64,000 nucleotides of DNA. It comes from Adineta vaga (taxonomy: Eukaryota > Animalia > Rotifera). The position numbers and the translations under genes are program-made. The DNA lies in the NCBI GenBank assembly GCA_021613535.1, contig CP075495.1:4464001-4528000 (forward strand). The letters run 5' to 3'. This document shows positions 19,292 through 43,279 of the stretch, in pieces. Position 1 is the first letter of the stretch, and each line of letters starts with the position of its first letter. The notes below the pieces were generated by a model. The model ran no database searches. It was given only the letters and a program-made list of their open reading frames with translations, and was not told the origin of the DNA.

Positions 19292-22748
<3,457 letters not shown>

Positions 22749-26280: not shown

Positions 26281-29200
26281 ATGGAGTCAAGTTTGACGTC
26301 GAGTTTCCTGAAAATTGGTGATACAGTAGCTTTATATGCCGAAGGAACAGTTTGTGGATTTATTAGTACACTTGGGTAAGATACATTTGTTACTTTCAAT
26401 TTTATAATGAAGTTTTTCGTAATATTCAATTAATAGTCTTGTTGATGATCGATGTGTCGTACAACCTGATGCCGGTGATTTACAAAAACCACCAAAAAAA
26501 TTTCGCGGTAAAGATAAATTTTGATCAGGAAAAAAAACGATTGTATCTAACAATCTGATTTTTATCTTCATCCATAGATTGTTTGTTTCGTATATGTCCC
26601 AGTCATCGTTATAGCGCTCAAACTCAATATTGGAATGCTTTGAAAAGTCCAAGTGCTGTTCGAGATTTGAAAAAATTACAATTAGCAGCAGATACAGAAA
26701 AACGTCAAAATGAGGAAGAAAGTCGGAAACAAACGGGTACAATTATTAAATATGGCGATACAGTTGTTCAATTACTTCATATTAAAAGTAATAAATATTT
26801 AACAGTGAATAAACGTCTCCCAGCATTTTTGGAAAAAAATGCCATGCGTGTTTCTCTCGATGTTAGTGGTACTGAAGGTTCATGGTTTCAAATCGAACCA
26901 TATTATAAATTACGTGCGAAAGGCGAACGTGTACGTTTTCTTTAGTTTTGTACATGATTAATAATTTCTCCTAGGAAATTAATATGTTCTCTAGGTTGTA
27001 GTTGGTGATAAAGTTGTATTGATGCCATATAGTGGTGGACAACCATTACATGTTAGTGAATTAGAATTACCAGATCATCCTGGTTCCAAAGAAGTACGTA
27101 GAGATATTTTCGTTTTCTAATCATAAGTATGAAATTCGACATTCCAACTGGTTAAAATCAAAGAGAGATTATTGTGAAAGAAAAAAAAACAAAATTAACT
27201 TTCTTCTAGTGCTGCAGTGTTATTAATTTACATACGGTATTAAAAGAATGAGATTTGATTCGTTTTGAAAATGCAGTGCAGTTTTTGTTTGTTATTTTTC
27301 TAATGCATGTGCAATGTGATTGATATTTTTATTTTCTCTGTTATTTAGATCAATTGTTATTCATATACTTCCGTATGTTTGATGTGCATTTGTAGACACA
27401 CACACACACGCATTAGCACATTAATAAGAAACAAAAAATTCTCATTTTATTTGCCTGTCAAATGAGATAAATTTGCTTTTTCACGTATCTTTCTATAATA
27501 TTTCAATGGTGAAAGTTTTTCAGAGAGATTAGGATAATACGATTTGAATGCATGTCAGATTTTTCTATTCATGGATAATAATGATGATTACAGGTTTTGG
27601 TTCTTGAATGAAACTTATGCAAGATTTCATAACTAATTTTTTTGTTCGAAATTGTTTAACAGAATGAAATGAATATCTTTTAACGATTTTTTTCCCTATG
27701 CACTGCATCCCCACGCTTTTCATATCAGTATTGTTTTCAGTGGAGTTATATTTTAATCAAAAAAAAAGAAAGAAAACGATTTGAATCGAGAATTTATTTA
27801 AAATTCTGTTTTTACTCAATAGGTTAATTCTCATCTACAAACAAGTTGGAAAATTGTTTTATTTATGTCATGCTATGAAGGTACTAATGAAGTATTGAAA
27901 AGTGTAAGTTTAAATTTCTTTTGTTTCTTTGAAAATAAAATCTAATTCATTTAAAGGGTGATATTGTTCGTTTATTTCATGCTGAACAAGAGAAATTTCT
28001 GACATGTGATAATTATCGAAAGAAAAGTGTTGTATTTCTACGTGCGACAGGTCGTGCATCAGCAACATCAGCGACGTCATCAAATGCATTGTGGGAAATT
28101 GAAGTTGTTCAACAGGATCCATGTCGTGGTGGTGTTGGTCAATGGAATTCATTATTTCGTTTTAAACATCTAGCTACTGGACAATATCTTGCTGCTGAAG
28201 TTGATAATGATCAAACATTTGATGCAACACGACAAAAATTACGTGGCCCACCCGGTACACCTGTGTTTGCTCTCGTACCTATTCCACATGGTTATGATAT
28301 ATCATCAATATTTGAACTTGATCCAACTACGATAACACGTAATGAAGAAGCTGTACCATGGGGTTCTTATGTACGTTTACAACACATTTGTACGAATACA
28401 TGGGTACATTCAACAAATATTAAATTAGATCCAGATGATGATAATGTTCGTTTTAAAATTGGTTGTGCATTAACAAAAGAAGATCGAGAAGCATTTCAAA
28501 TTGTACATGTATCACCCGATGAAGTACGAGATTTAGATTTTGCTAATGATGCTGCCCAACATTTTGATATGACGGTTTCCAAATGGGAAAAAATTGGAGT
28601 AATGAATGTTCATGCAAATGATAGAAAGTAAGTTCAGATATATATATTTCTTCGAATGAAAAGACGATTCTCTTACATGAAGTATTAGCAAGGTCTTCTT
28701 TCTTCTGTCAAAGATAAACTAATAAATCAAGGATTATTGTATAGATAAAACTAGTTGACAACCGACGAACGAGATAGATGATGATGAAAATAATTTCCGA
28801 TTAGATACAAGTACAATATCGAAATGATAACAAATAATATATATTTTTTCTCTATATTAAGATATGAGAATACATTAGGTCAAAGAAATATGATTAAACA
28901 TATGAAAATCAAAATGTATTTTGTCATACAATTGACAATTGTTCTATAAATAGAAGAAAATGATTGAAATACATATTACTTATCGTGTTTGAAAGAAAAA
29001 TCATGAAATTTCATTCCTTATTCTTTAGACAAGTGATATTACTCTTAACTGATATTGTATATTTTCTTGCTTGTCAAGAAAATAATGGAAGTGATCCATT
29101 CGATGTTCAAATTTTAAAACCTAATCGTGAACGTCAAAAATTAATTCGTGAACAGAATATTCTAAAACAAGTAGATTTCTTCTTCAAGATTGTTACATAT

Positions 29201-32200
29201 CTATATCCTCTTCCATCTAGTTATTTCGTATTCTACGTGTAGTAAAACCTCGATTAGAACAAGAACGTTCCAATGTTCATGCAAACAATGCTTCGTCATC
29301 ATCATCATCATCAATAACAACGACACGTCCGGATTTTCATTCTAATCAATATCAAAATTCAGGAGCCATTAATAATGATACATATGGATCATCACAACAA
29401 CAAGATGCAGATATACGTTTCTCAACGACATTTTATCAAATGAAAACCATCTGTCGACTATGTTATCGAATTCTCAAACATTGTCAACAAGAATATCGAA
29501 AAAATCAAGTACGAAATATGTTTTTTTAACTTATCTTGCATTTAATTTAATATTAGGAAACAATTGCGAAAGAATTTTCTTTCATGCAATCTCAAATTGG
29601 TTATGATATATTAGCTGAAGATACGATCACAGCATTATTACATAATAATAAGAAATTATTAGAAAAACATATAACAGAAAAAGAAATTGATACATTTGTT
29701 AAATTATTACGAGAAAAACGCGATTGCAAGTAATGATCCAATGAATAATTTCTTTCAAGCAAAAAAAAAACTTCGATTTCATTTCTTAGATTTCTTGAAT
29801 ATTTGTCAGATTTATGTGTATCAAGTAATCAAGCTATAGCAAGAACACAAGAAATGATATGTAAATCTGTTTTGGAGAAAAATTCGGATATTTTAATTCG
29901 AACAAAGTTTGTGATCAAAAAACGATTTTATGTTCTTATTCATAGTAGAAATTTGAATATCTTAGATTGGAAGTAAAAGGATGTGTAGAAGATATGATCT
30001 TAGATGATAATGTCAGTCCACCAACTGGTTTTTCAAATCAAAATTTTTTACGTGAAGTTATATTAACATGGGATGGGAAATCAGAATCAATTGAATTTAT
30101 GGCTGGTGTAGTTCGAGATCAATTAGCACATCCAAGACGAGAAGAATTTCGAAGTATTTTAGAATATTACAGGTAAATACGAATATTAACAAAGCAAATT
30201 TTTCAATGACATTCAGCTATAATGTAGGATAATTCATTACTTCATGGACGAATGCTAATATTAGGAATAGCTTCTATTTATCCATCAAGTTTTTATCTCT
30301 CCTTCATTAATTGTCTATGATCCTTTAAAATACTCTGTTTAGTCTCTATCTCATTATAAAAACAATGAATTTTCAGTACATTAATTATGCTAAACTTAAT
30401 ACGTACTAATTTAACTATTCTTGTATTGAATCAGGAAATGTTCAGAAGTGATTTGACTTACCTTATTAAGATAATTCAAATGCATGTAAAATTTTATCAT
30501 TTATATTTTTCTATCTTAGATATCAACTCAATTTATTCTCTCATATGTGCTTTGATCGACAATATTTAGCCATTGACAATTTATCTCTAGAACTATCGAT
30601 TGATTTAATCTTAACGTAAGTTTACAAGAAGAAAAGGATCATACATATATTTTTCTTCTTTTCAGATGTACAAAAAGCGAAAATCTTCCAGCAGATTTAC
30701 GTGCTGCTTTCTGTCGTTTAATGGTTCATATGCATGTTAATCGTGATCCACAAGAAGAAGTTACACGTATCAAATATGCTCGATTATGGAATCAAGTGAA
30801 ACCAGCTATTTCTTTAAATGAGTATATAATCAAATAGAAAACGACGATAGAATATTCTATATTGTTTGACAATATCTATTTAGTTATGATCAAACTATTA
30901 GTGGATCACTTGAACCAGCAGAAAAGAACGAAAATCGTCCAAAATTTGAATCTACAATGAAATTTGTTGAAGATTATTTGAAAACAGTTGTTGAACAACC
31001 CAATTCATTTTCTGATCGTGAACAAAATAAATTAACACATGAAGTAAAAGAGAATGAAAAGAAAATATATTTCTTGAAATGAATCAATATATTCTTTTTC
31101 AAGGTTGTCAATTTAGCTCGTCGATTGATATTCTTTGGTTTCTATAGTTTCGAAGATTTACTGAAACTTACTCAAACATTATTGGGTATTCTCGATACAA
31201 GTAAAGTTCTATCGAATAATATTCATCCATTAGCAATAGAACAAGGTAAGAATTCTTTGATTGATTTTTGTTATTAAAATAAATATTTCTTTAGCTACTA
31301 AACTTGGAACGAATTCAAAATCGAATAAATATGATCATGTTATTTCTTCTACAACATCATATCCAGTACCAGATTCTACAGTTGAACAACAAACTGATGT
31401 TCTCGATGATTTAGCCTATGAAACAAAGATGAATGTTATTGCAATTTTAGAATTTATTCTTGATATTCGTCTTGATTTTCGTATATCTCGACTTATATCG
31501 ATTTTCAAACAAAAATACGATCGTTTAGGTATATAGTTGATAATTCAATTGATTCTTTAATTGTAAATATTTCTAGAACCATCAAATATTTTAACTGGTA
31601 TGGATTTACAAATAGCTGATATTGAATGTATATTTGATTCGAATACGAATCCTATCAATGAACCAAATCTTGATTTGGATGATGCAAAAGGAAAGATTTT
31701 TCTTAAAGTTTTATTGAATTTAATCATGCATGATTATCAACCATTAGTATCACGTGCATTATCATTACTTTTTCGACATTTTAATCAACGTAAAGAAACA
31801 CTTCAACATTTAAATCAAGTTCAATTACTTGTTAGTGAAACGGATATTAAAAATTATAAGCAAATTAAACGTGATCTTGATCAATTACGATTGTTTGTGG
31901 AAAAATCTGAATTATGGGTTTATAAAAAAGGTAAAGATGGCGGATCAATAACAGCCGGTGGAAATGAAGCAAATGCAGATCAAGATGATAGAAAAGATGA
32001 TGAATTTGAAATCAAAGTAAAAATCAAAGGAATTATTCTATATTAAGATAAACATATTCTATTGAATTCAATAGAAATTAGCTACATCATCGGGTTTAAC
32101 CGATCCAGATTTAGATATCAATGGTCCTAATGTAAGCGAAGAATCAGCCTATCGGTATACATCAATCTTCCAGGTTAGTATTTACACACACACATAAGTT

Positions 32201-35200
32201 TTGTTTAACTCTTCTATTTTTCAACTCAATACTTATAAAAACAAGATATAAATATTGCTTATTTATTAATCAATTTACACTCAGTAATTCCGAATATTCC
32301 ATACACGAAAACATTTTAATCGTTTTTCGAGTCAAATGTCTGAGTATCTATCTATTTTCGTAGGGCATACATACATTCATTGACACGGTAATTGGAATAC
32401 TATTTTTCTCTCTATACATATCCATATATATATATATACCTATATATCTATCTATTCAAAATGTTATTTGATTCAATTGCACATTTGTTTTTTCTTCTTT
32501 GATTGTTCTTTTATTCTTATTCTGGGTCGAACTTGCTTCTCTAGCAATATAAACTAAATCAGAGAAGCATTTGATTGTTGTTGCATGATTAAAATTAAGA
32601 CGAAAAAGAAGCCATAATCAAAAATGGTTACCCATACATTCTTAAGCATGTTTCACTTATTTTTTCAAAGAAATTTAATTATTTCTTATATTAAAATAAG
32701 CATGCTGGTATTGATTGGCTTGTAGAACTAATCTATCATTTGTTTGTAATTAACACATACATACACATACACACACAAAAGAAATGCATTTCTTAATTTA
32801 GAATTTTCAATCTTATTCCATTAATTTTCATATTTAGATTCTTCGTCGAATGATGAAATTGTGTGTTGTTGAAGGTCCAGATGGAAATTTATATGCTCGA
32901 GAAAATGAACAACGTTTATTAAGAAACATGGATGTTCATGTTGTTGTGCTTGATTTATTAAAAATTCCTTATGATAAAGTAGATCTGAATTGAATTTTGA
33001 GTTTAAGAAAAAAAACCATGTTTTTTCTTTAGGCTGAAGATACACGAATGAATCATATTATGAAATTAGCACATAATCTTTTACAATATTTTTGCTATAA
33101 TAATCCAACTAATCAAGCTAAATTGTATGAATTATATTTCAGTGATTATCAGCAGATATCTGAAGTAAAGAAAACTTTCATTAATATATTTGAATTCTAT
33201 TGAATTTCATTTACTTTTAGGAACAAGAAGTTGAAACTTGTTGTTATATATTTATGAATAATGTCCAACTATGTAAAACAATAACAGAAAAACATATTCA
33301 ACATTTTGTTCATTTGATTGAATTACATGGACGAAAAGTTCTATATATCAAATTTTTACAAACAATTGTCAAAGCAGAAAATCAATATATCAAAAATTGT
33401 CAAGATGTTGTCATGTCAGAAGTAGGAAATTCTATTTGAAACAAAGGAAAAAAAATGAAATTTGTTGGATGTGTGTTGTTGTTTTTTGTAGTTAGTTAGT
33501 TCGGATGAAGTATTAATGTTTTATGAAAAAGGAAATTTAGCAGATCTTGTTGAACGTATGCAATCAGAAACTGAACGTACAGATCCAAATTCTTTATTAA
33601 ATTATCATATTCAACTTGTACATCTTCTTGCAATGTGTACTGAAGGAAAAAATGCATCAACTGAAATCAAATGTCATTCATTAATTGGTCTAGATGATAT
33701 TGTTTTAATTGTAACACATCCAGATTGTATTCCAGAAGTTTGTGTTCGAAATGAAATGACTATTGTTATTTTAATGATATATTTTTATTTAGGTTAAAAA
33801 TGCGTATATTACATTCTTAAATCATTGTTATATCGATACAGAAGTTGAAATGAAAGAAATTTACAATAGCCAACATATTTATACTCTTATTGAAAGTTCA
33901 TTTTGTCCTGATATTGAAAAAGTAATTGAATTCTTTATTTAAACAAAAGAATTATTTAATGTATTTCGTTTAGTTAATTACAAAACTAATGGAACGTCGA
34001 AATCTGGAAAAATATATCTTAGATACTGTATCTGATTTAATCAATCAATTCTTTAATTCACCATTTTTTGAACAATCTTCAGCACCACAGGTAATACAAA
34101 GAAAACTCTATTCATCTTATTTAATATTTGTTCTAAGTTGGTACAAGATAGTTTTTTTCGAAAATATTAAAATCCCTTTTGTAATGTAAACATGAGACTT
34201 ACTCCTAGGATCCATGCTTGCTCAATGATGGTCGATCAATTGAGATTGCTCCATCAATAATACTAATTGCTTCGTGGGAGGTACTCTTATCATTTAGAAA
34301 TCAAAGCTAACAGATAGTTGACAATACATAACATTTTGCATGTTTATTCGATCAATTGTTTGTTTGTTATTCGTCTTTATATTTTACTCTCTTCTTACAG
34401 CTTATTGATAACGATGAATTGAAGGTAAGCACATCGGAAATAAAAGCAATATCAAGCGAAATTTTTACCCATAAGCTTCATTCCTACAGTTCATTTTCTT
34501 TTTCTTTTGGTACGGCAAAAGTATACAGCTCATGCGCATTTCATATCGCTGCACGTTCGGATTGTACATATTCTATCTATTGTTTTTGGCAAATTGAAAA
34601 TCGATTAAATATCATGTCTAAATCCATGTTTTATTCGTAATTTTTATCTTTAGCATCGCAATACAATATTAGTATCATTGCATAGTCATCTTGCTCGATT
34701 ATTAAGTGTACCATGGTTATCATCATCGCAACGTGAACGAATCGATCGATGTATTCATATTTTATCATTAATTGGTAATAAAAAGGAAAAATTAATTACC
34801 TAAAGATTTCGTATTCTTATCAATTTTAGCTGATCGTCGTGGGTTGAGTCATTTCTTACGTTCAAATCATTCAACAGTTGCAGAAATTACTAGTCGTTCA
34901 CGACGAACAAGTCGGAGTGCAACAGCTGATCGAATGCATAGTGTTGAACATATTTATACATCAGGCCATAAACTTGATACTCTCGAAGATGTTGAACATA
35001 AACGTGTTATTGATAATTTCGTGGTATGAAACAAATTAGAACTATTCTTGAATATTTGAATCTATTATTTTTTACCTAGGATTTTCTTTCGCAAGTCAGC
35101 ATTAGATTAAATCCACTTGTTCAAGCTGAAGGTAGTGTATTAGTGGATGTTATTCGTGCACCATATGCATTATTTCCTGAAACAAATGAATGTCGATTAA

Positions 35201-38200
35201 AATTTCTCTATGGGACATTTGTTCATAAGTACGTATGATTCACCTATGATTATCTAGAGAATCTCTTTTTTCGTATATGAAAATCAATGGATAAAAAAAA
35301 CTAACCGTATCATCGTTCGAAATGCATATCTATTCTCTCGATATGAATCCGTCTAAAACATTATTTAGACTAATAAATCATACAACAAAGCTGTTAATAA
35401 AACATCATGAAAAACAACTCAGTTTTTATGTACTCAATATCTTAGCCGATTATGCTCGAACAATGCAGCATAAGCAGATTCTACACTGGACATCTAATCG
35501 TGAGGTAGATGCTAAAGAAAATTCACACACGTGTTGTTTTGATTTCTAAAAAAAAAGAAACTCAAAGAAATGAAAAACACACGATCACGATTTTCTTCTT
35601 GTCTCGAATAAAGTAGTAGTGTAATTGATTAAACGCATATGCTACTGCTCTTTTGTTCGAGATGTCAAAGCTCTATAATTGACAAAAATCTACCTGATTT
35701 GTTCTTGCTTACAATCCGATTTTGTGTCATTTAGATTGATACAGCATGCCAAATATTTGCTTACACAAACCGATGAAAGTCTATGTTTGCGCATCATGCA
35801 TGCACTCAAATCAATGGTCAAAAGCAGTTATGAATTCGATTCAAGGGTATATAAATGCTTTTGCTTAGCTTTTGTTTTCTTTTCTTTTTGATTCAATCAA
35901 TAATCAAAAATGAATAGATATCTGATAAATATGTCGTCTTCTTGCCTTTCAGGGACATGGTTTAAGATTGAAATTATTGCGAAGATATTTTTCGGATGAT
36001 AAACAATATCTTAAATCACTTCATCAACCATTAAAAGGTTTGTTTTGAAAAGAAAAAGAAAATCGATTATTTTGTCTTTTATTCTTTGATACTTTTAGAA
36101 GAAGATGCTTTAGAAAGATTACGAATAACACAAAATGAATTGAATAAACAAGGAGCGAGTGATCTTGTTGTAGAATTATTTATGAGTGAATCACCGATTA
36201 ATATACTTGAAGAAAGCGTCAATTTAGCAATAGCATTATTAGAAGGTGGTAATACAGAAGTTCAAGTTCGTAATTAATTTTGATCATTCGTTTTTTAAAT
36301 TGAAAATCTAATCATTTAGATAAGTATTTACCGTCATTTACATGGATCGGAAACAGCATCGGAGAAATTCTTTCAAGTCTTTTATGATAAAATGTGTATT
36401 GCACAAAAAACTCTGAAAAGTATGCCATCAACAACATCAGAAATGAATCAAAATAATGACGATTTTGAAGAAACTATATATTCACCGAAATCTGGTGCAA
36501 TGTCACCAATTTTAAGTCCCACACTGAATGAACGACAACCATCACTTGTTCCAATGACAGATGAAAGTTTTAATTTTGAACAACAACAACCACTGATTGC
36601 ACAAACAACGAATACAATAGATCACAGTTTGTTTTCTAGTTCTATTATATCAAATTTCACATGAATTTTCTTTAAATCGATTTAGATGTTTTAACGATTA
36701 ATCAACCAGAAGAAGAGCCACAAGCATTCGTTGCAAAATTAACTACGTATCAAGAACCAGAATCATTCGAAACACTAAAAAATCCTGCAACTGGAACATT
36801 TGATATTCTTGATTTTCCGTAAGACTTTTCTGGAAAGTATTCGAATTTTACTCTGGTATAATTTTGTTAATTTAGTTCTCAAAATCGTCGTTATAAACTT
36901 CCATTTGAAATTCGTATTATGCAACCAATCTTACGTTTTCTACAACTTCTTTGTGAAAATCATAATCCAGAATTTCAAGTATTTTCCTATTTTCTTCTTT
37001 TTTCAACTTTAAAATTTAATACATTTGTTTAGAACTATCTTCGACTACAAGATAATAATAAAACAAACTATAATCTTGTTTGTGAAACATTGAAATTTCT
37101 TGATGCAATCTGCGGTTCTCAAACTGGATTACTTGGCCTATTAGGAAATTATATCAATGAAGATAATGTTGAATTAATCAATCAAGCATTAAATACGTTA
37201 ACTGAATATTGTCAAGGACCATGTCGAGATAATCAAGATGCAATTGTTAATCATGAATCAAATGGTATTGATATCATTATTGCTATTGTTTTGAATGATA
37301 TAACACCATTGAATCAAAAAAATTATGATCTTGTTTTGGAATTGAAGGTAAAAATGAATTGAATCTTATATATATATATATATATGCATATATGTATGTC
37401 TACAATTTATTCTTTAGGATAATGCATCAAAATTACTTCTAGCTGTGATGGAAAGTCGAGATGACAGTACGAATGCAGAGCGTATTCTTAGAAATATTGT
37501 ACCAGTTTCACAATTGGTACGTTTGAATATTTATTGAATGAGAAAACGAAAGGAATTATCATTTATTTTATGTGTATATTTAGCTTGATGTTGGTTGTGA
37601 TATATATGCACGTGGTAAACAACAAGAAATGGAAGGAAAAAGTGGTCAAGAGACGGAAAATGAAGAAGTATTACATGATGAAGATCCGAATGAAAATTCC
37701 GATAATGTTGCTCAAACTGTTGGTCATAATATGTATATACTCGCATATCAGGTAAGAAATCTTTTGGAATTGATTGTTTGTATTTGAAATCATCGAGAAT
37801 GTTGTTAATAACTTCATATCTTTGCGTTTTCATGTTGTACAACAAATCGAAAAGTATTCTCAGGTATAAATTAAAAAAGAAAATCAAACTAGTAGAAGCA
37901 CCGAGACTATATCTTTTGTCATTTTGCAATTTTGTTTTCCGGCTTATTCACGGATGATGGGAAAATTTATTGGATTTATTAAAAGATTTGTTCATTTTTT
38001 CATGTTGTTTTGTCATTAAGCTTGCTCGTCATAATCGTGAACTTGAAATTTTAATGAAACATCGAACATTGAATGATGAAGCTTTATCATATTATCATAA
38101 ACATACAGCTGAAATTGAAATAATTCGACATGATCGTTCAATTGAACCAAGTAAGATTTTGAATATGAAAAAAGAAAATCACATTTTTTATTTCAAGTTG

Positions 38201-41059
38201 TTTTTCCTGTTCCACAATTATGTGAATTTTTAACTGTTGAAAAAAAACAAAAAGTCTTTCTTACATGTGAACAAGATGAACAAGGTTCAAAAGTAAAAGA
38301 TTTCTTTGAAAAATTTCCTGAAATATTCGAAGAAATGAAATGGCAAAGAAAATTACGACATCAACCAACATTATATTGGTTTTCATCACATATGTCATTA
38401 TGGAGTGATATATCATTCAATTTTGCTGTTTTAATTAATATACTCGTTGCTGTTTTTTACCCATTTAATAAAGGTCTTAAAGGTAAGAAGCAAAATTTGC
38501 TTGAGATCAAGTGAAACTATGTTCGTTTGAATAGATCTTGATCCACGTGCTTCCGCTGCCATATGGAGTGCATTATTCGTAACATTAATTGCTATTCTAA
38601 TGAAACCAAATGTGACATCTATGCGTATGTTTTTTGTTGCGGGAATTTTACGATCAATCTATTCAGTTGGACTTGGACCGACATTATGGTTAATGGGAGC
38701 AATACAAGTAAAGATGATTGTTTTAATTTGATGAAAGAATTTGTAAAATATTATTTTATTTCTTACTTAGGTTTTGAATAAAGGGGTATTTTTAGTTAGT
38801 TTTATGGGAAATAATGGAACATTTTCGAAATCTCGTTATGAGAATTTAACAAACTTTGAACTTGTTTATCATGTCGGATATTTACTTTTGTGTGTATTTG
38901 GTTTATGTGTACATGAATTCTTCTATAGTCTATTGGTAAGTTGATCGTTCATGTATTAATTTGTACTTGTAATTCTATTGTAAATCTATTTCGTCTGTGA
39001 ATTTCAATACTTTGATTATAATGAACAATTATTTTAGAATTGTCAATGCTTTAGAATCATTTGAAGTTTTTTTCTTCTATCAAAATTGATTCAGTGAAGA
39101 TTTATGTTGAAGATCTAATTAGTTCTATATGAGACAGTACAACTGAACATTCGTTAAATGAGGAAAAGACTCTTGAGAAGAATTCTAGTTAGAGCTTTGT
39201 ATTCTTTTATGTATATGTTTTTGTTTTGTTAAAATGTTGTCTTGTATTGATTATCTTAGTTACTCGATGTTGTCTATCGTGAAGATACTTTATGGAATGT
39301 TATTCAATGTGTTGTACGCAATGCTAAATCTGTCATCTTAACAGCTGTTTTTGCTGTTATAATCATATATTTATTTGCTATATGTGGTTATCTATTTATC
39401 CAAGATGATTTTCTTATGGAAGTGAATAATAAACCACTTGGAATTGCTCATGAAAATGATACAAATATATTACGTAAGTTAAAGTCAAGTAATAAAATCT
39501 TTATTACAATACATTTTCTTTTCTTCAATGCTTTTGCTGCTTTAATTATTCGTCGTCGTATCTTTAAATAGAAAAGAAATCATCTCATATTTTCTCTTTC
39601 CAGTTGTTAGATATCGTTTTTCGAGATGCAACTTTATTACAAGTAACACAATCAGTAACACGTAATGGCAAATCTATTATGTTAACAATGATGCTTGCAC
39701 TTGTTTTAATCTATCTTTTTTCTGTTATGGGTTTCGTTTTTTTTCGTGATGATTTTCTTACACATATTCAAACAAGTCTATATCCATCGCATCCACATCA
39801 TCGATATCGACGAACAAATAATTCACCAAAAACCACGACATTGACACGTATGTCAATTAGTCGTTGTATCGTACTATTCTTGTTGATCTTAATTGTTTTG
39901 TCGTCTTTTAAAAACGTAGAAAAGAATATGTATTCTCATGCACTGTTTTCTTTTAGCTACTACCATTCCAAGCATTGTTAATGATGGATATTGTACCAAA
40001 GACAATTGTACTAATGATACATTAACTGGACATATTCGGCACGCTACACAAGCATCAACAATTTTGCCCGAAGAAGCAGTTGGGGAAGAAGTTGAACGAT
40101 CGTGTGACACATTATTCATGTGTATTGTTACAACACTTAATAAAGGCTTGAGGAATGGCGGTGGTATCGGTGACGTTCTAAGGCAGCCATCTAGTCAAGT
40201 GAGTAAAAAATGAAAATATAACCTAGTTTCAATCGGATAGCCAACAGAAATTCTCTTTTATTTGATCTTGTTTCTTCTTGATATGAAATCAAAGAAGTAT
40301 GTTTTGTTATTAGGAGCCACTCTACTTCTTCCGTGTTATTTATGATATGATGTTCTTCTTCATTGTTATTATTATTACTTTGAATTTAATTTTTGGTGTT
40401 ATTATCGATAATTTCGCTGATCTACGTACAGAAAAACAACGCAATGATGAAATTCTTCGAAATACATGTTTTATTTGTGGTAAAATTAAACAGTCTTCTT
40501 CTAATAATATTTTCATGCTTTTATTCTTTAGGACTTGATCGTAAATCATTCGATAATAAACATGTAACATTTGAAGATCATATTCGTAAAGTTCATAATA
40601 TGTGGAATTATGTTTATTTTATGGTTTTAATTAATGTGAAAGATTCAACTGAATATACGGGTCCTGAAAGTTATGTTCATGAAATGATTGAAGTTCGTAC
40701 ATTTTTATTTTATTTTTTCTCTAGAGAAAAAACAAAACAAACTCGTTGAATTTCTTTTTAGCAACGAAATCTTGATTGGTTTCCACGAATGCGTACGAGT
40801 AGTTTAGATATTCAAGAAGATAAAAACAAAGAAGATATGGATAATCGAATATTAAAATTTCAAATGGATGATGCAAATAAAGCAATTAAATCTCTTACAA
40901 TGGAATTATCTGAATTACAAAAATTAGTAAGAAGAAGAAGAATTATGAATGAAATATTGTTATATAAATGTTTGATTTTAGGTAACAGAATCTCGAGCAC
41001 AAAAACATCGAATGAATTTTCTTCAAAATCCATCATTACCAACACCATTGAATGCATAA
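26281..41059 (+). CDS. ITPR: Inositol 1,4,5-trisphosphate receptor
   Basis: [21 protein letters not shown]3-binding core ([26 protein letters not shown]), RIH domains, TEYCQGPC, six TM segments, pore [41 protein letters not shown]. Confidence 0.97.
35369..35504 (+). CDS. ITPR mutually exclusive exon pair 1, variant A ([45 protein letters not shown])
   Basis: ttatttAG acceptor and GTagat donor, 136 nt, phase 2 to 0, no stops, homologous to variant B. Confidence 0.7.
35735..35846 (+). CDS. ITPR mutually exclusive exon pair 1, variant B ([37 protein letters not shown])
   Basis: catttAG acceptor and GTatat donor, 112 nt, phase 2 to 0. Closer to the canonical [27 protein letters not shown] segment. 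Confidence 0.85.
39260..39473 (+). CDS. ITPR mutually exclusive exon pair 2, variant A (S4-S5 linker/TM5/luminal loop)
   Basis: [55 protein letters not shown]..; 214 nt, phase 0 to 1, AG/GTAAGT. Confidence 0.85.
39604..39847 (+). CDS. ITPR mutually exclusive exon pair 2, variant B (S4-S5 linker/TM5/luminal loop)
   Basis: [55 protein letters not shown]..; 244 nt, phase 0 to 1, CAG/GTATGT. Confidence 0.85.
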
Positions 41060-41908
41060 AAGAGAAAACGGTGCTAATCCTTGACAAATTAAAACAAAAA
41101 TAAACAGATTTTTATCTCTTGCTCGCTCTCTTTCGTTCTTATTGTTAATTATCTTTACTTCTTTTTTTCTCGCTTTTTTTTTCTTCTAAAAAAATACTCC
41201 GTTCTTGTCTGTTTTTTTTCTTCTTCTTCTTCTTTTCACTGTGTACACAAACTTTTTAGTATTGCTAAAAAACGTTATTTACTTTTGAGCAAAATGAAAG
41301 TTTGTAATCTCTCTTTCCTTCGTTCGTTCGTTCGGTTTTTTTCTGCATTCTATGTATGTGTGAATGTTGTATTTTTAGACAAAAGAGAAATAAAATTAAC
41401 GGAAACTTTTTTTGAAAAAGAATATCATGATTAGTTGCCAAAAGATGGGTAAGTTGTGTGATTATTAAGAGAAATAATTATGGAAAGGTATATAGCAGAT
41501 CTAACACGAACATTTACGAGAAACTTGAAGTTTTAATGAAAAACTTCGTGAAAAATTGAAGTAAATGAAAGACGAACTGAACAAGAATAAACATCGACGT
41601 GGAGCATCGTTGAAGGAGAATGATTTTATACTGTAGTAGTCATGTTTTAGAATGAAAAAAGAACCCGCTTCTTTCACTGCTCATGTTCTGTTTAAACAAC
41701 TGTTTTTCTGTGTAAATATTTTAAAAACAATTTCTACGCTTTTGTAACATATTTCTGAATTGTATGTAGAAAATCGGAAAAACAGAGAATATGATGATGA
41801 CTATGTTCTGTGTAATATATGCCATTAGATTAGATAATTATAAAGAGCACACTTTTTAAACAGATTTGAATGGATATCGAATTCGATTGCTTGAAAACTT
41901 CCTTTCAG

Positions 41909-43279
41909 ATGAAATATCATTTTTTCTTCATTATCAATATCTGTATTCTGTGTCCAATACAATCGACCATAGGTCCTGGTAGTCGTAAATCTTCTTTAAA
42001 TACTCCAATAATGACGGATCTACCAGAACCTTCTTCGAGTGAAAGTAAACCAGCATCGCAACTTCGTTCTATATTAGAAAATCCCTTACCGCCAACTGAT
42101 ACAAATGTTCTTCAACGTGATCTCTTACAAGAAGATATTAGTCCTCGAACAATTCTAGAAAATCATGAATCATATTGTCATAGTTGTGCTGATATCCGAC
42201 AGTTTTCTAATCCGACTCTTATCTATATTACTCCATGGAATAATCATGGTTATGATTTAGTAAAAATTTTCACACAAAAATTTGATTATATTTCTCCAGT
42301 ATGGTTTCGTATCAAACGTAAAGGTTTTCAAAATTATCTCATTGAAGGACTACACGATATAGACGTATCATGGATCGAAGCTTTAAAAACAAAACGTTCT
42401 GATGTACGTATTGTACCTCGTGTTAGTTTTGAACGATGGTCTGCTGATGATCTTCATGCTTTATTTCAATCTGAAGATGAAAAACAAGAAGTATCATTAA
42501 CATTGAAAAATCTACTGACTGAATACACTCATCTATTTGATGGGTTTGTTCTTGAAATACTTTCACAATTTCATGGTGCGTCAAAAGTAACGATTCATCA
42601 TCTTCTAACTGATATTGCTCAACATATACATGATATTGAAAATACTACGCGTCGAAAAGAAATCATTCTAGCTGTTCCACCCTTAGAAGAATATTTTGAT
42701 CGTAATGATTTTAATCTTTTATCAGAACATTTAGATGGCTTTCATGTTATGACATATGATTTTCCAACGAAAGAACCAGGTCCTGTTTCTCCAATAGGTA
42801 AGTTCACTTTTTTCTCTTTCAATATCAAAATGATTTGATTTTCTTACTGGTCGACAGAATGGATTAAAGAAGTAATGCGTAAATTTCCTATATCTAAACG
42901 TGATGCTTCTGTTAAACTTTTTCTTGGTATCAATTTCTATGGTTATCGATACGATCATATTATGCCACCACCTCCAAAAGATAAATCACAATATCATATG
43001 CAACATATCGTTGGTCGTAGTTATCTTGATTTTCTTAAACAATATTATCCAACAGCAAAAATTCATTTTGATACGCGTGCACATGAACATGTTACTGTTG
43101 TTTATACTCGTTCTGAAGCTAATGTTAATCGGCAAGCACATTATATGCCGCAAATAATTATCTTTTATCCAAGTTTAAAATCAATCTATGATCGTTTACA
43201 ATTAGCAATTAAATTTAACGTTGGAGTAGCTATTTGGGATGGTGGACAAGGATTCGATTATTTTTTCGATCTATTTTAA
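41909..43279 (+). CDS. CHID1: Chitinase domain-containing protein 1 (GH18-like, non-catalytic)
   Basis: Signal peptide, YITPWNNHGYDLVKIFTQKFDYISPVW, FDGFVLE, MTYDF, LGINFYG, GVAIWDGGQGFDYFFDLF. One intron at ~42798-42857. Confidence 0.92.

Follow-up and report, generated by a model that had tools for sequence, protein, structure and literature searches.

The IP3 receptor (IP3R) gene of Adineta vaga contains two adjacent, homologous exons, A and B, of which one or the other is taken into each mRNA, with the result that one gene yields two subunits with oppositely charged luminal faces. The best explanation of this arrangement, and one that we consider very likely, is an old mutually exclusive pair with a regulated choice and two tuned IP3R subunits as its product. 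That the exons exclude each other and are both functional is nearer still to certainty. Within the 64,000-nucleotide stretch of DNA analysed here (the window; all features are on the forward strand), exon A (39260-39473, 214 nt) codes for the S4-S5 linker and S5, followed by a luminal start that is acidic and bears an N-glycosylation sequon, while exon B (39604-39847, 244 nt) codes for an alternative S4-S5 linker and S5 and a basic luminal start. The pair is flanked by a constitutive upstream exon (38771-38935) that includes S4 and ends in FYSLL, and by a constitutive downstream exon (39957-40198) that supplies the rest of the luminal loop, the luminal cysteines, the pore helix, and the GGGIGD filter; RNA joins support both. 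An initial annotation, made from the letters alone, had described two intact exons of 214 and 244 nt running from phase 0 to 1, with AG/GT sites, flanks at 38935 and 39957, and their translations, all of which proved accurate. Its proposal that the two are homologous is borne out by ~47-49% identity over 55 amino acids and by the match of each exon to the same part of the Pfam Ion_trans domain. Both align to residues 2417/2418-2471/2476 of rat IP3R1, with bit scores against solved IP3Rs of 67 for A and 61 for B. A and B thus have the features of tandem duplicated exons: they are adjacent and homologous, encode the same region of the protein, and share the same phase. The description of the products as pore-module variants needs one qualification: the swap takes in the S4-S5 linker and S5 but no more than 11-30 residues at the luminal start, and constitutive exons supply the luminal cysteines, the pore helix, the GGGIGD filter, and S6.

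The host gene extends from start to stop codon over 26281-41059 in an approximate model of ~35-40 exons, built on the exon-wise match to a second gene copy, the order of Pfam domains, and RNA that joins the 3' exons. The spliced model was compared exon by exon and Pfam was run on single exons, which gave Ins145_P3_rec, two RYDR_ITPR, RIH_assoc, and Ion_trans matches in that order. The domain features that distinguish an IP3R are present, with an N-terminal Ins145_P3_rec domain, two RIH domains, a RIH-associated domain, and a C-terminal channel domain. Exon B scores 61 bits against IP3R and 27 bits against ryanodine receptor (RyR), placing the channel region nearer to IP3Rs. The gene spans 14.8 kb with short introns, a size that fits a protein of ~2700 residues, and its GGGIGD filter is encoded in exon 39957-40198. 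Domains, filter, and size together identify the gene as an IP3 receptor, and IP3-gated Ca2+ release by a tetramer is presumed from the family. The genome assembly (100.8 Mb in six contigs that form homoeologous pairs, 30% GC) has two IP3R genes, on C2 and C5. A ryanodine receptor pair is the probable source of weaker Ins145_P3_rec matches on C3 (9.61 Mb) and C6 (6.44 Mb). The upstream neighbor at ~19400-22715, which we take to be an aconitase-like gene, and a downstream single-ORF-like gene at 42089-43279 keep their order around the C5 copy; counterparts of the downstream gene in two further loci, L005 and L032, match Glyco_hydro_18.

RNA evidence came from assembled contigs of four public runs, compared with window positions 37600-41400; three of them, each from a different study, reach this region, with contigs spliced at GT-AG introns. 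The join of the upstream exon to A (38935-39260), the join of A to the downstream exon (39473-39957), and the join of B to the downstream exon (39847-39957) were each seen in three studies, and the upstream-B join (38935-39604) in two. A single 300-nt contig runs from the end of the upstream exon through the whole of B into the downstream exon. Neither an A-B join nor an upstream-downstream skip occurs in the three contig sets, which come from whole animals; assembled contigs drop rare joins and give no isoform proportions, and the sides of the joins measure 27-29 nt. Mutually exclusive use, as first proposed, is therefore supported by RNA joins for each exon alone, with no A-B join and no double skip among the contigs. 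The four A/B junctions that the initial annotation had named for checking were all found in these assembled contigs, and the junction that it expected to be missing, 39473-39604, was absent.

Both exons are also intact in the C5 gene copy, where they measure 235 and 232 nt. Another 15 distinct bdelloid-type loci (26-50% GC) came from a metagenome scan and contig look-ups, with contigs taken for human left aside, bringing the total to 17 with the gene copies in the window and on C5. The upstream-A-B-downstream order is kept in 17/17 loci, with A and B free of stops and of length 3n+1, and although lengths range from 199 to 238 nt for A and from 208 to 247 nt for B, none departs from 3n+1. As had been claimed from the window alone, either exon by itself preserves the reading frame and both or neither breaks it: inclusion of A+B, or skipping, leads to an early stop in every one of the 17 loci. 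When dN/dS was calculated for each exon, as had been proposed, the first 55 codons gave 0.010 in A and 0.16 in B, indicating purifying selection on both; the flanking constitutive segments gave 0.049 and 0.008. Values of dS are 0.54 for A and 0.63 for B, compared with 0.93 and 1.30 in the flanking exons, a reduction that is expected where exons carry splicing signals. The amino acid sequence of B evolves ~16 times faster than that of A, although 33 of the 55 residues at its start do not vary across loci. On these comparisons, A is the near-invariant, rotifer-typical form and B a faster-evolving second form. Read-through of the B protein into intron 3 was considered and rejected, as it is not conserved and the C5 copy stops after 3 codons.

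Since the pair occurs in both gene copies and throughout the sampled loci, it must have existed before the two copies separated and before the sampled bdelloid-type loci diverged. B is absent from four monogonont-like loci that cover this region, each of which has one A-like exon. In a 55-column tree, from which vertebrate-like rows were excluded, A groups with the monogonont-like exons (100/98) and B falls outside them on a long branch. Forcing an A+B clade costs 14.5 log-likelihood units, with an AU p value of 0.062, so that such a clade is not rejected. This topology suggests that the duplication occurred before the monogonont split and that B was then lost in monogononts. The mutually exclusive pair would have arisen when a single IP3R exon was duplicated in tandem long ago, and all bdelloid-type IP3R genes sampled have retained it.

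IP3Rs are among the most conserved of channels, and their S4-S5 linker and S5 are nearly constant across animals. In the first 55 residues, which form the gating linker and S5, A and B show fixed differences at 24 of 55 positions. A has the rotifer-typical residues C17, A22, V25, F31, and C42, in common with the monogonont-like exons. B retains the outgroup residue at S17, T19, G22, I25, L31, and S40, positions where A departed, and changes E8 to D, E9 to A/S/P/T (E in one copy), and N13 to Q/Y/H in the linker, as well as A29 to M; E8, E9, and N13 are invariant in 28/28 outgroup sequences. Between residue 48 and the end of the exon, the net charge is -2 to -6 for A and +3 to +5 for B, with a basic tail on B, in 17/17 loci. 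An N-x-S/T sequon is present in A in all 17 loci, once spanning the exon junction, and in B in 5/17, including the window, where it reads N-N-S. The contrast first drawn between an acidic, sequon-bearing A and a His/Arg-rich B consequently stands for A and for the Arg/Lys residues of B, which are conserved, but not for the His-richness of B, which is not. An R-x-R-R motif in the luminal tail of B is found in 12/17 loci (39800-39815 in the window); it fits the proprotein convertase consensus, a match that has meaning only if a B subunit exits the ER.

Structures of IP3R3 show the S4-S5 linker and S5 shifting away from S6 as the channel opens (PMC8930994), and the loop after S5, the third luminal loop, is a site of control by ER redox proteins (PMC10235943). 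The movement of these elements in gating and the luminal redox control of the loop make a functional difference between A and B plausible, and the two forms probably differ measurably as channels. Subunits of the two types may assemble into homotetramers and heterotetramers with different behavior, and the likely outcome would be that gating and luminal regulation are tuned by cell type or stage. A different reading of the same substitutions is that B is not a second working channel subunit but a modulatory one, either non-conducting or altered in trafficking, which would act as a dominant negative or be relocated. The changes at E8, E9, and N13, the A29 to M change, the switch of the luminal start from acidic to basic, and the frequent R-x-R-R motif all fit this idea. 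However, B keeps the outgroup residues at the six positions where A departed, matches solved IP3Rs with a score not far below that of A (61 compared with 67 bits), and is joined to an unchanged filter and S6, and we regard a modulatory B as rather unlikely.

Turning to how one exon is chosen, the splice sites that flank A and B vary far less among loci than constitutive ones do, with the upstream donor fixed as GTAAGT in 15/15 loci, the A acceptor as CTTAG in 13/15, and the B acceptor as TCCAG in 14/15. Three kinds of intronic element accompany them, with counts that are descriptive because the motifs were chosen after viewing the alignment and the loci are related: UGUUGU, a putative CELF-type motif, precedes the A acceptor (39234-39240; TGTTGT in 13/15 loci and 0/70 control introns), a YGCY cluster, putatively of MBNL type, lies in the A-B intron (39529-39543; TGCTT in 14/15 loci and 4/70 control introns), and GTYGTTGT follows B (10/15 loci and 0/70 control introns). 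Exon A has three invariant fourfold-degenerate sites, two of them within TGTTGT motifs. Over the B donor, a hairpin is predicted (39832-39867; z of -2.9 in the window) in which pairing between the final 16 nt of B and the 20 nt that open the following intron encloses the donor, and its 3' arm is the GUYGUUGU element at 39860-39867. The mean z score of this hairpin is -2.3 in 14 loci, compared with -0.25 to +0.67 at five other splice sites, where no conserved structure was found. Hairpin cells are paired in 87% of cases, against 24-59% when the structure is slid, with weak pairing in three loci; covariation does not exceed that of shuffles (101/500), and a swap test gave p of 0.08. A search for docking and selector elements of the Dscam type, considering long-range pairings of >7 bp, detected only the local hairpin at the B donor.

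These elements suggest that the choice between A and B is most likely regulated. By default, the B donor would be masked by the hairpin. An MBNL-type protein bound to the YGCY sites after A would favor A, and a CELF-type protein bound to the UGU-rich sites before and inside A and to the 3' arm of the hairpin would favor B; because that arm is itself a UGU-rich element, such a protein could open the hairpin. In planarians, UGU and GCUUGC are recognized by CELF and MBNL proteins, which promote inclusion of an exon from the intron that follows it (PMC4978528). The genome has a pair of muscleblind-like (MBNL) genes (C1 ~7.40 Mb and C4 ~5.55 Mb) and a pair of UPF1 genes (C3 ~5.71 Mb and C6 ~11.21 Mb), and rare A+B or skipped mRNAs, being out of frame, would be removed by nonsense-mediated decay. 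We offer this specific CELF/MBNL/hairpin switch tentatively, as a proposal with somewhat less than even prospects. Less probable again is the most detailed form of the account, in which the duplication predates the bdelloid-monogonont split and monogononts lost B, the hairpin, CELF, and MBNL make the use of B dependent on cell type or stage, and the altered linker and basic, mostly unglycosylated luminal start change the conductance or luminal control of homo- and heterotetramers.

Exclusion could instead be passive, with a steric clash between the A donor and the B branch point and no regulation of the choice. The missing A-B join among contigs would follow from such a clash, and the A-B intron is short (84-143 nt across loci). 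Most constitutive introns of the gene are shorter (~45-70 nt) and yet are spliced, which makes a steric explanation unlikely, and AG dinucleotides and branch-like motifs occur within ~20-40 nt of the B acceptor, which gives no indication of a distant branch point. We consider passive exclusion improbable and favor a regulated choice.

Another possibility is that B is mainly a regulatory, poison-like exon whose inclusion, often with a retained intron, cuts the output of functional A, with B protein a minor product. In one study, B was seen only with the A-B intron (39474-39603) retained on its 5' side, in a contig that links A to B unspliced, and in another, RNA coverage extends inside the intron after B (39848-39956). 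These observations suggest that part of the RNA from B is unspliced or unproductive, and they may represent splicing intermediates or retention. The predicted donor-masking hairpin and the rapid amino acid evolution of B compared with A are also in keeping with such a role. However, B is in frame, has a dN/dS of 0.16 and 33/55 invariant residues, has stayed 3n+1 through many indels, encodes a basic luminal tail in 17/17 loci, and is found in a fully spliced upstream-B-downstream contig, so that a poison-like role appears even less probable than passive exclusion. Finally, the chance that the pair is an assembly artefact, or that, as the initial annotation had allowed, one exon is never spliced in and decaying, is negligible, given the same pair in the C5 gene and 15 more loci from independent assemblies, purifying selection in all related loci, and RNA joins that include B.

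Elsewhere in the same gene, exons at 35369-35504 (136 nt) and 35735-35846 (112 nt) form a second candidate mutually exclusive pair, both of length 3n+1 and running from phase 2 to 0. Homology between them is faint (14 amino acids), and comparison of the gene with itself detected no recognisably duplicated exon other than A and B. The 35369-35504 exon is conserved in L005 and L032 and absent from the C5 copy and a third locus, L033. The intron between the two contains a strong predicted stem-loop (35601-35663; z of -6.7), with a similar stem of changed sequence in L005 (z of -3.3) and a weaker one in L032; it is a candidate control structure for this second pair.

Exon pairs of this type are well known in ion channels. 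Like the tandem duplicated exons of CACNA1C/D, SCN (exon 5a/5b), and Drosophila para, cacophony, and slo (PMC9741552; PMC12772994), A and B are adjacent homologues of shared phase, used one per mRNA, and they resemble them further in their age, purifying selection, conserved intronic elements, and channel host; the host here differs in being an intracellular ligand-gated Ca2+-release channel. Substitution of tandem duplicated exons is enriched in ion transport genes according to one survey, whose main text and two supplement files do not name ITPR (PMC9741552). The a/b exons of insect ryanodine receptors (PMC6026295; PMC3989282) are mutually exclusive duplicates in the sister family of Ca2+-release channels and are likewise conserved across a large clade, but they encode ~31 residues of the cytosolic SPRY2 domain, whereas the swap in the rotifer concerns the gating linker, S5, and luminal start; according to PMC6026295, no such exons were mapped in the IP3Rs of insects. 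The planarian CELF/MBNL program (PMC4978528) shares UGU-rich and GCUU motifs in downstream introns, and a spiralian setting, with the rotifer pair, but concerns cassette exons and is backed by knockdown data, whereas in the rotifer the evidence is the conservation of motifs around a mutually exclusive pair. Our literature search, which left most subscription papers outside it, returned no report of mutually exclusive exons in any IP3R or any rotifer, and within the literature searched the IP3R case appears to be new.

The A/B pair is a natural, long-selected swap of the gating module in a single gene whose filter and S6 stay the same, and it offers a ready-made test of what the linker residues and the charge or glycosylation of the luminal start contribute to gating. 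At ~1 kb, this mutually exclusive cassette is compact, contains candidate control elements, and is suited to minigene work, and if the hairpin/CELF/MBNL reading is true it would be the first IP3R with a splicing-switched gating and luminal module. Vertebrates likewise obtain IP3R diversity from one locus, through the SI, SII, and SIII splice variants of ITPR1, and in addition have three ITPR genes. The SI-SIII sites are cytosolic cassettes and not swaps of homologous exons. Vertebrate subtypes vary where the third luminal loop begins. Vertebrates thus diversify the S5 and luminal region by gene duplication and the rotifer by splicing, which here stands in for the gene-level subtype diversity of vertebrates.
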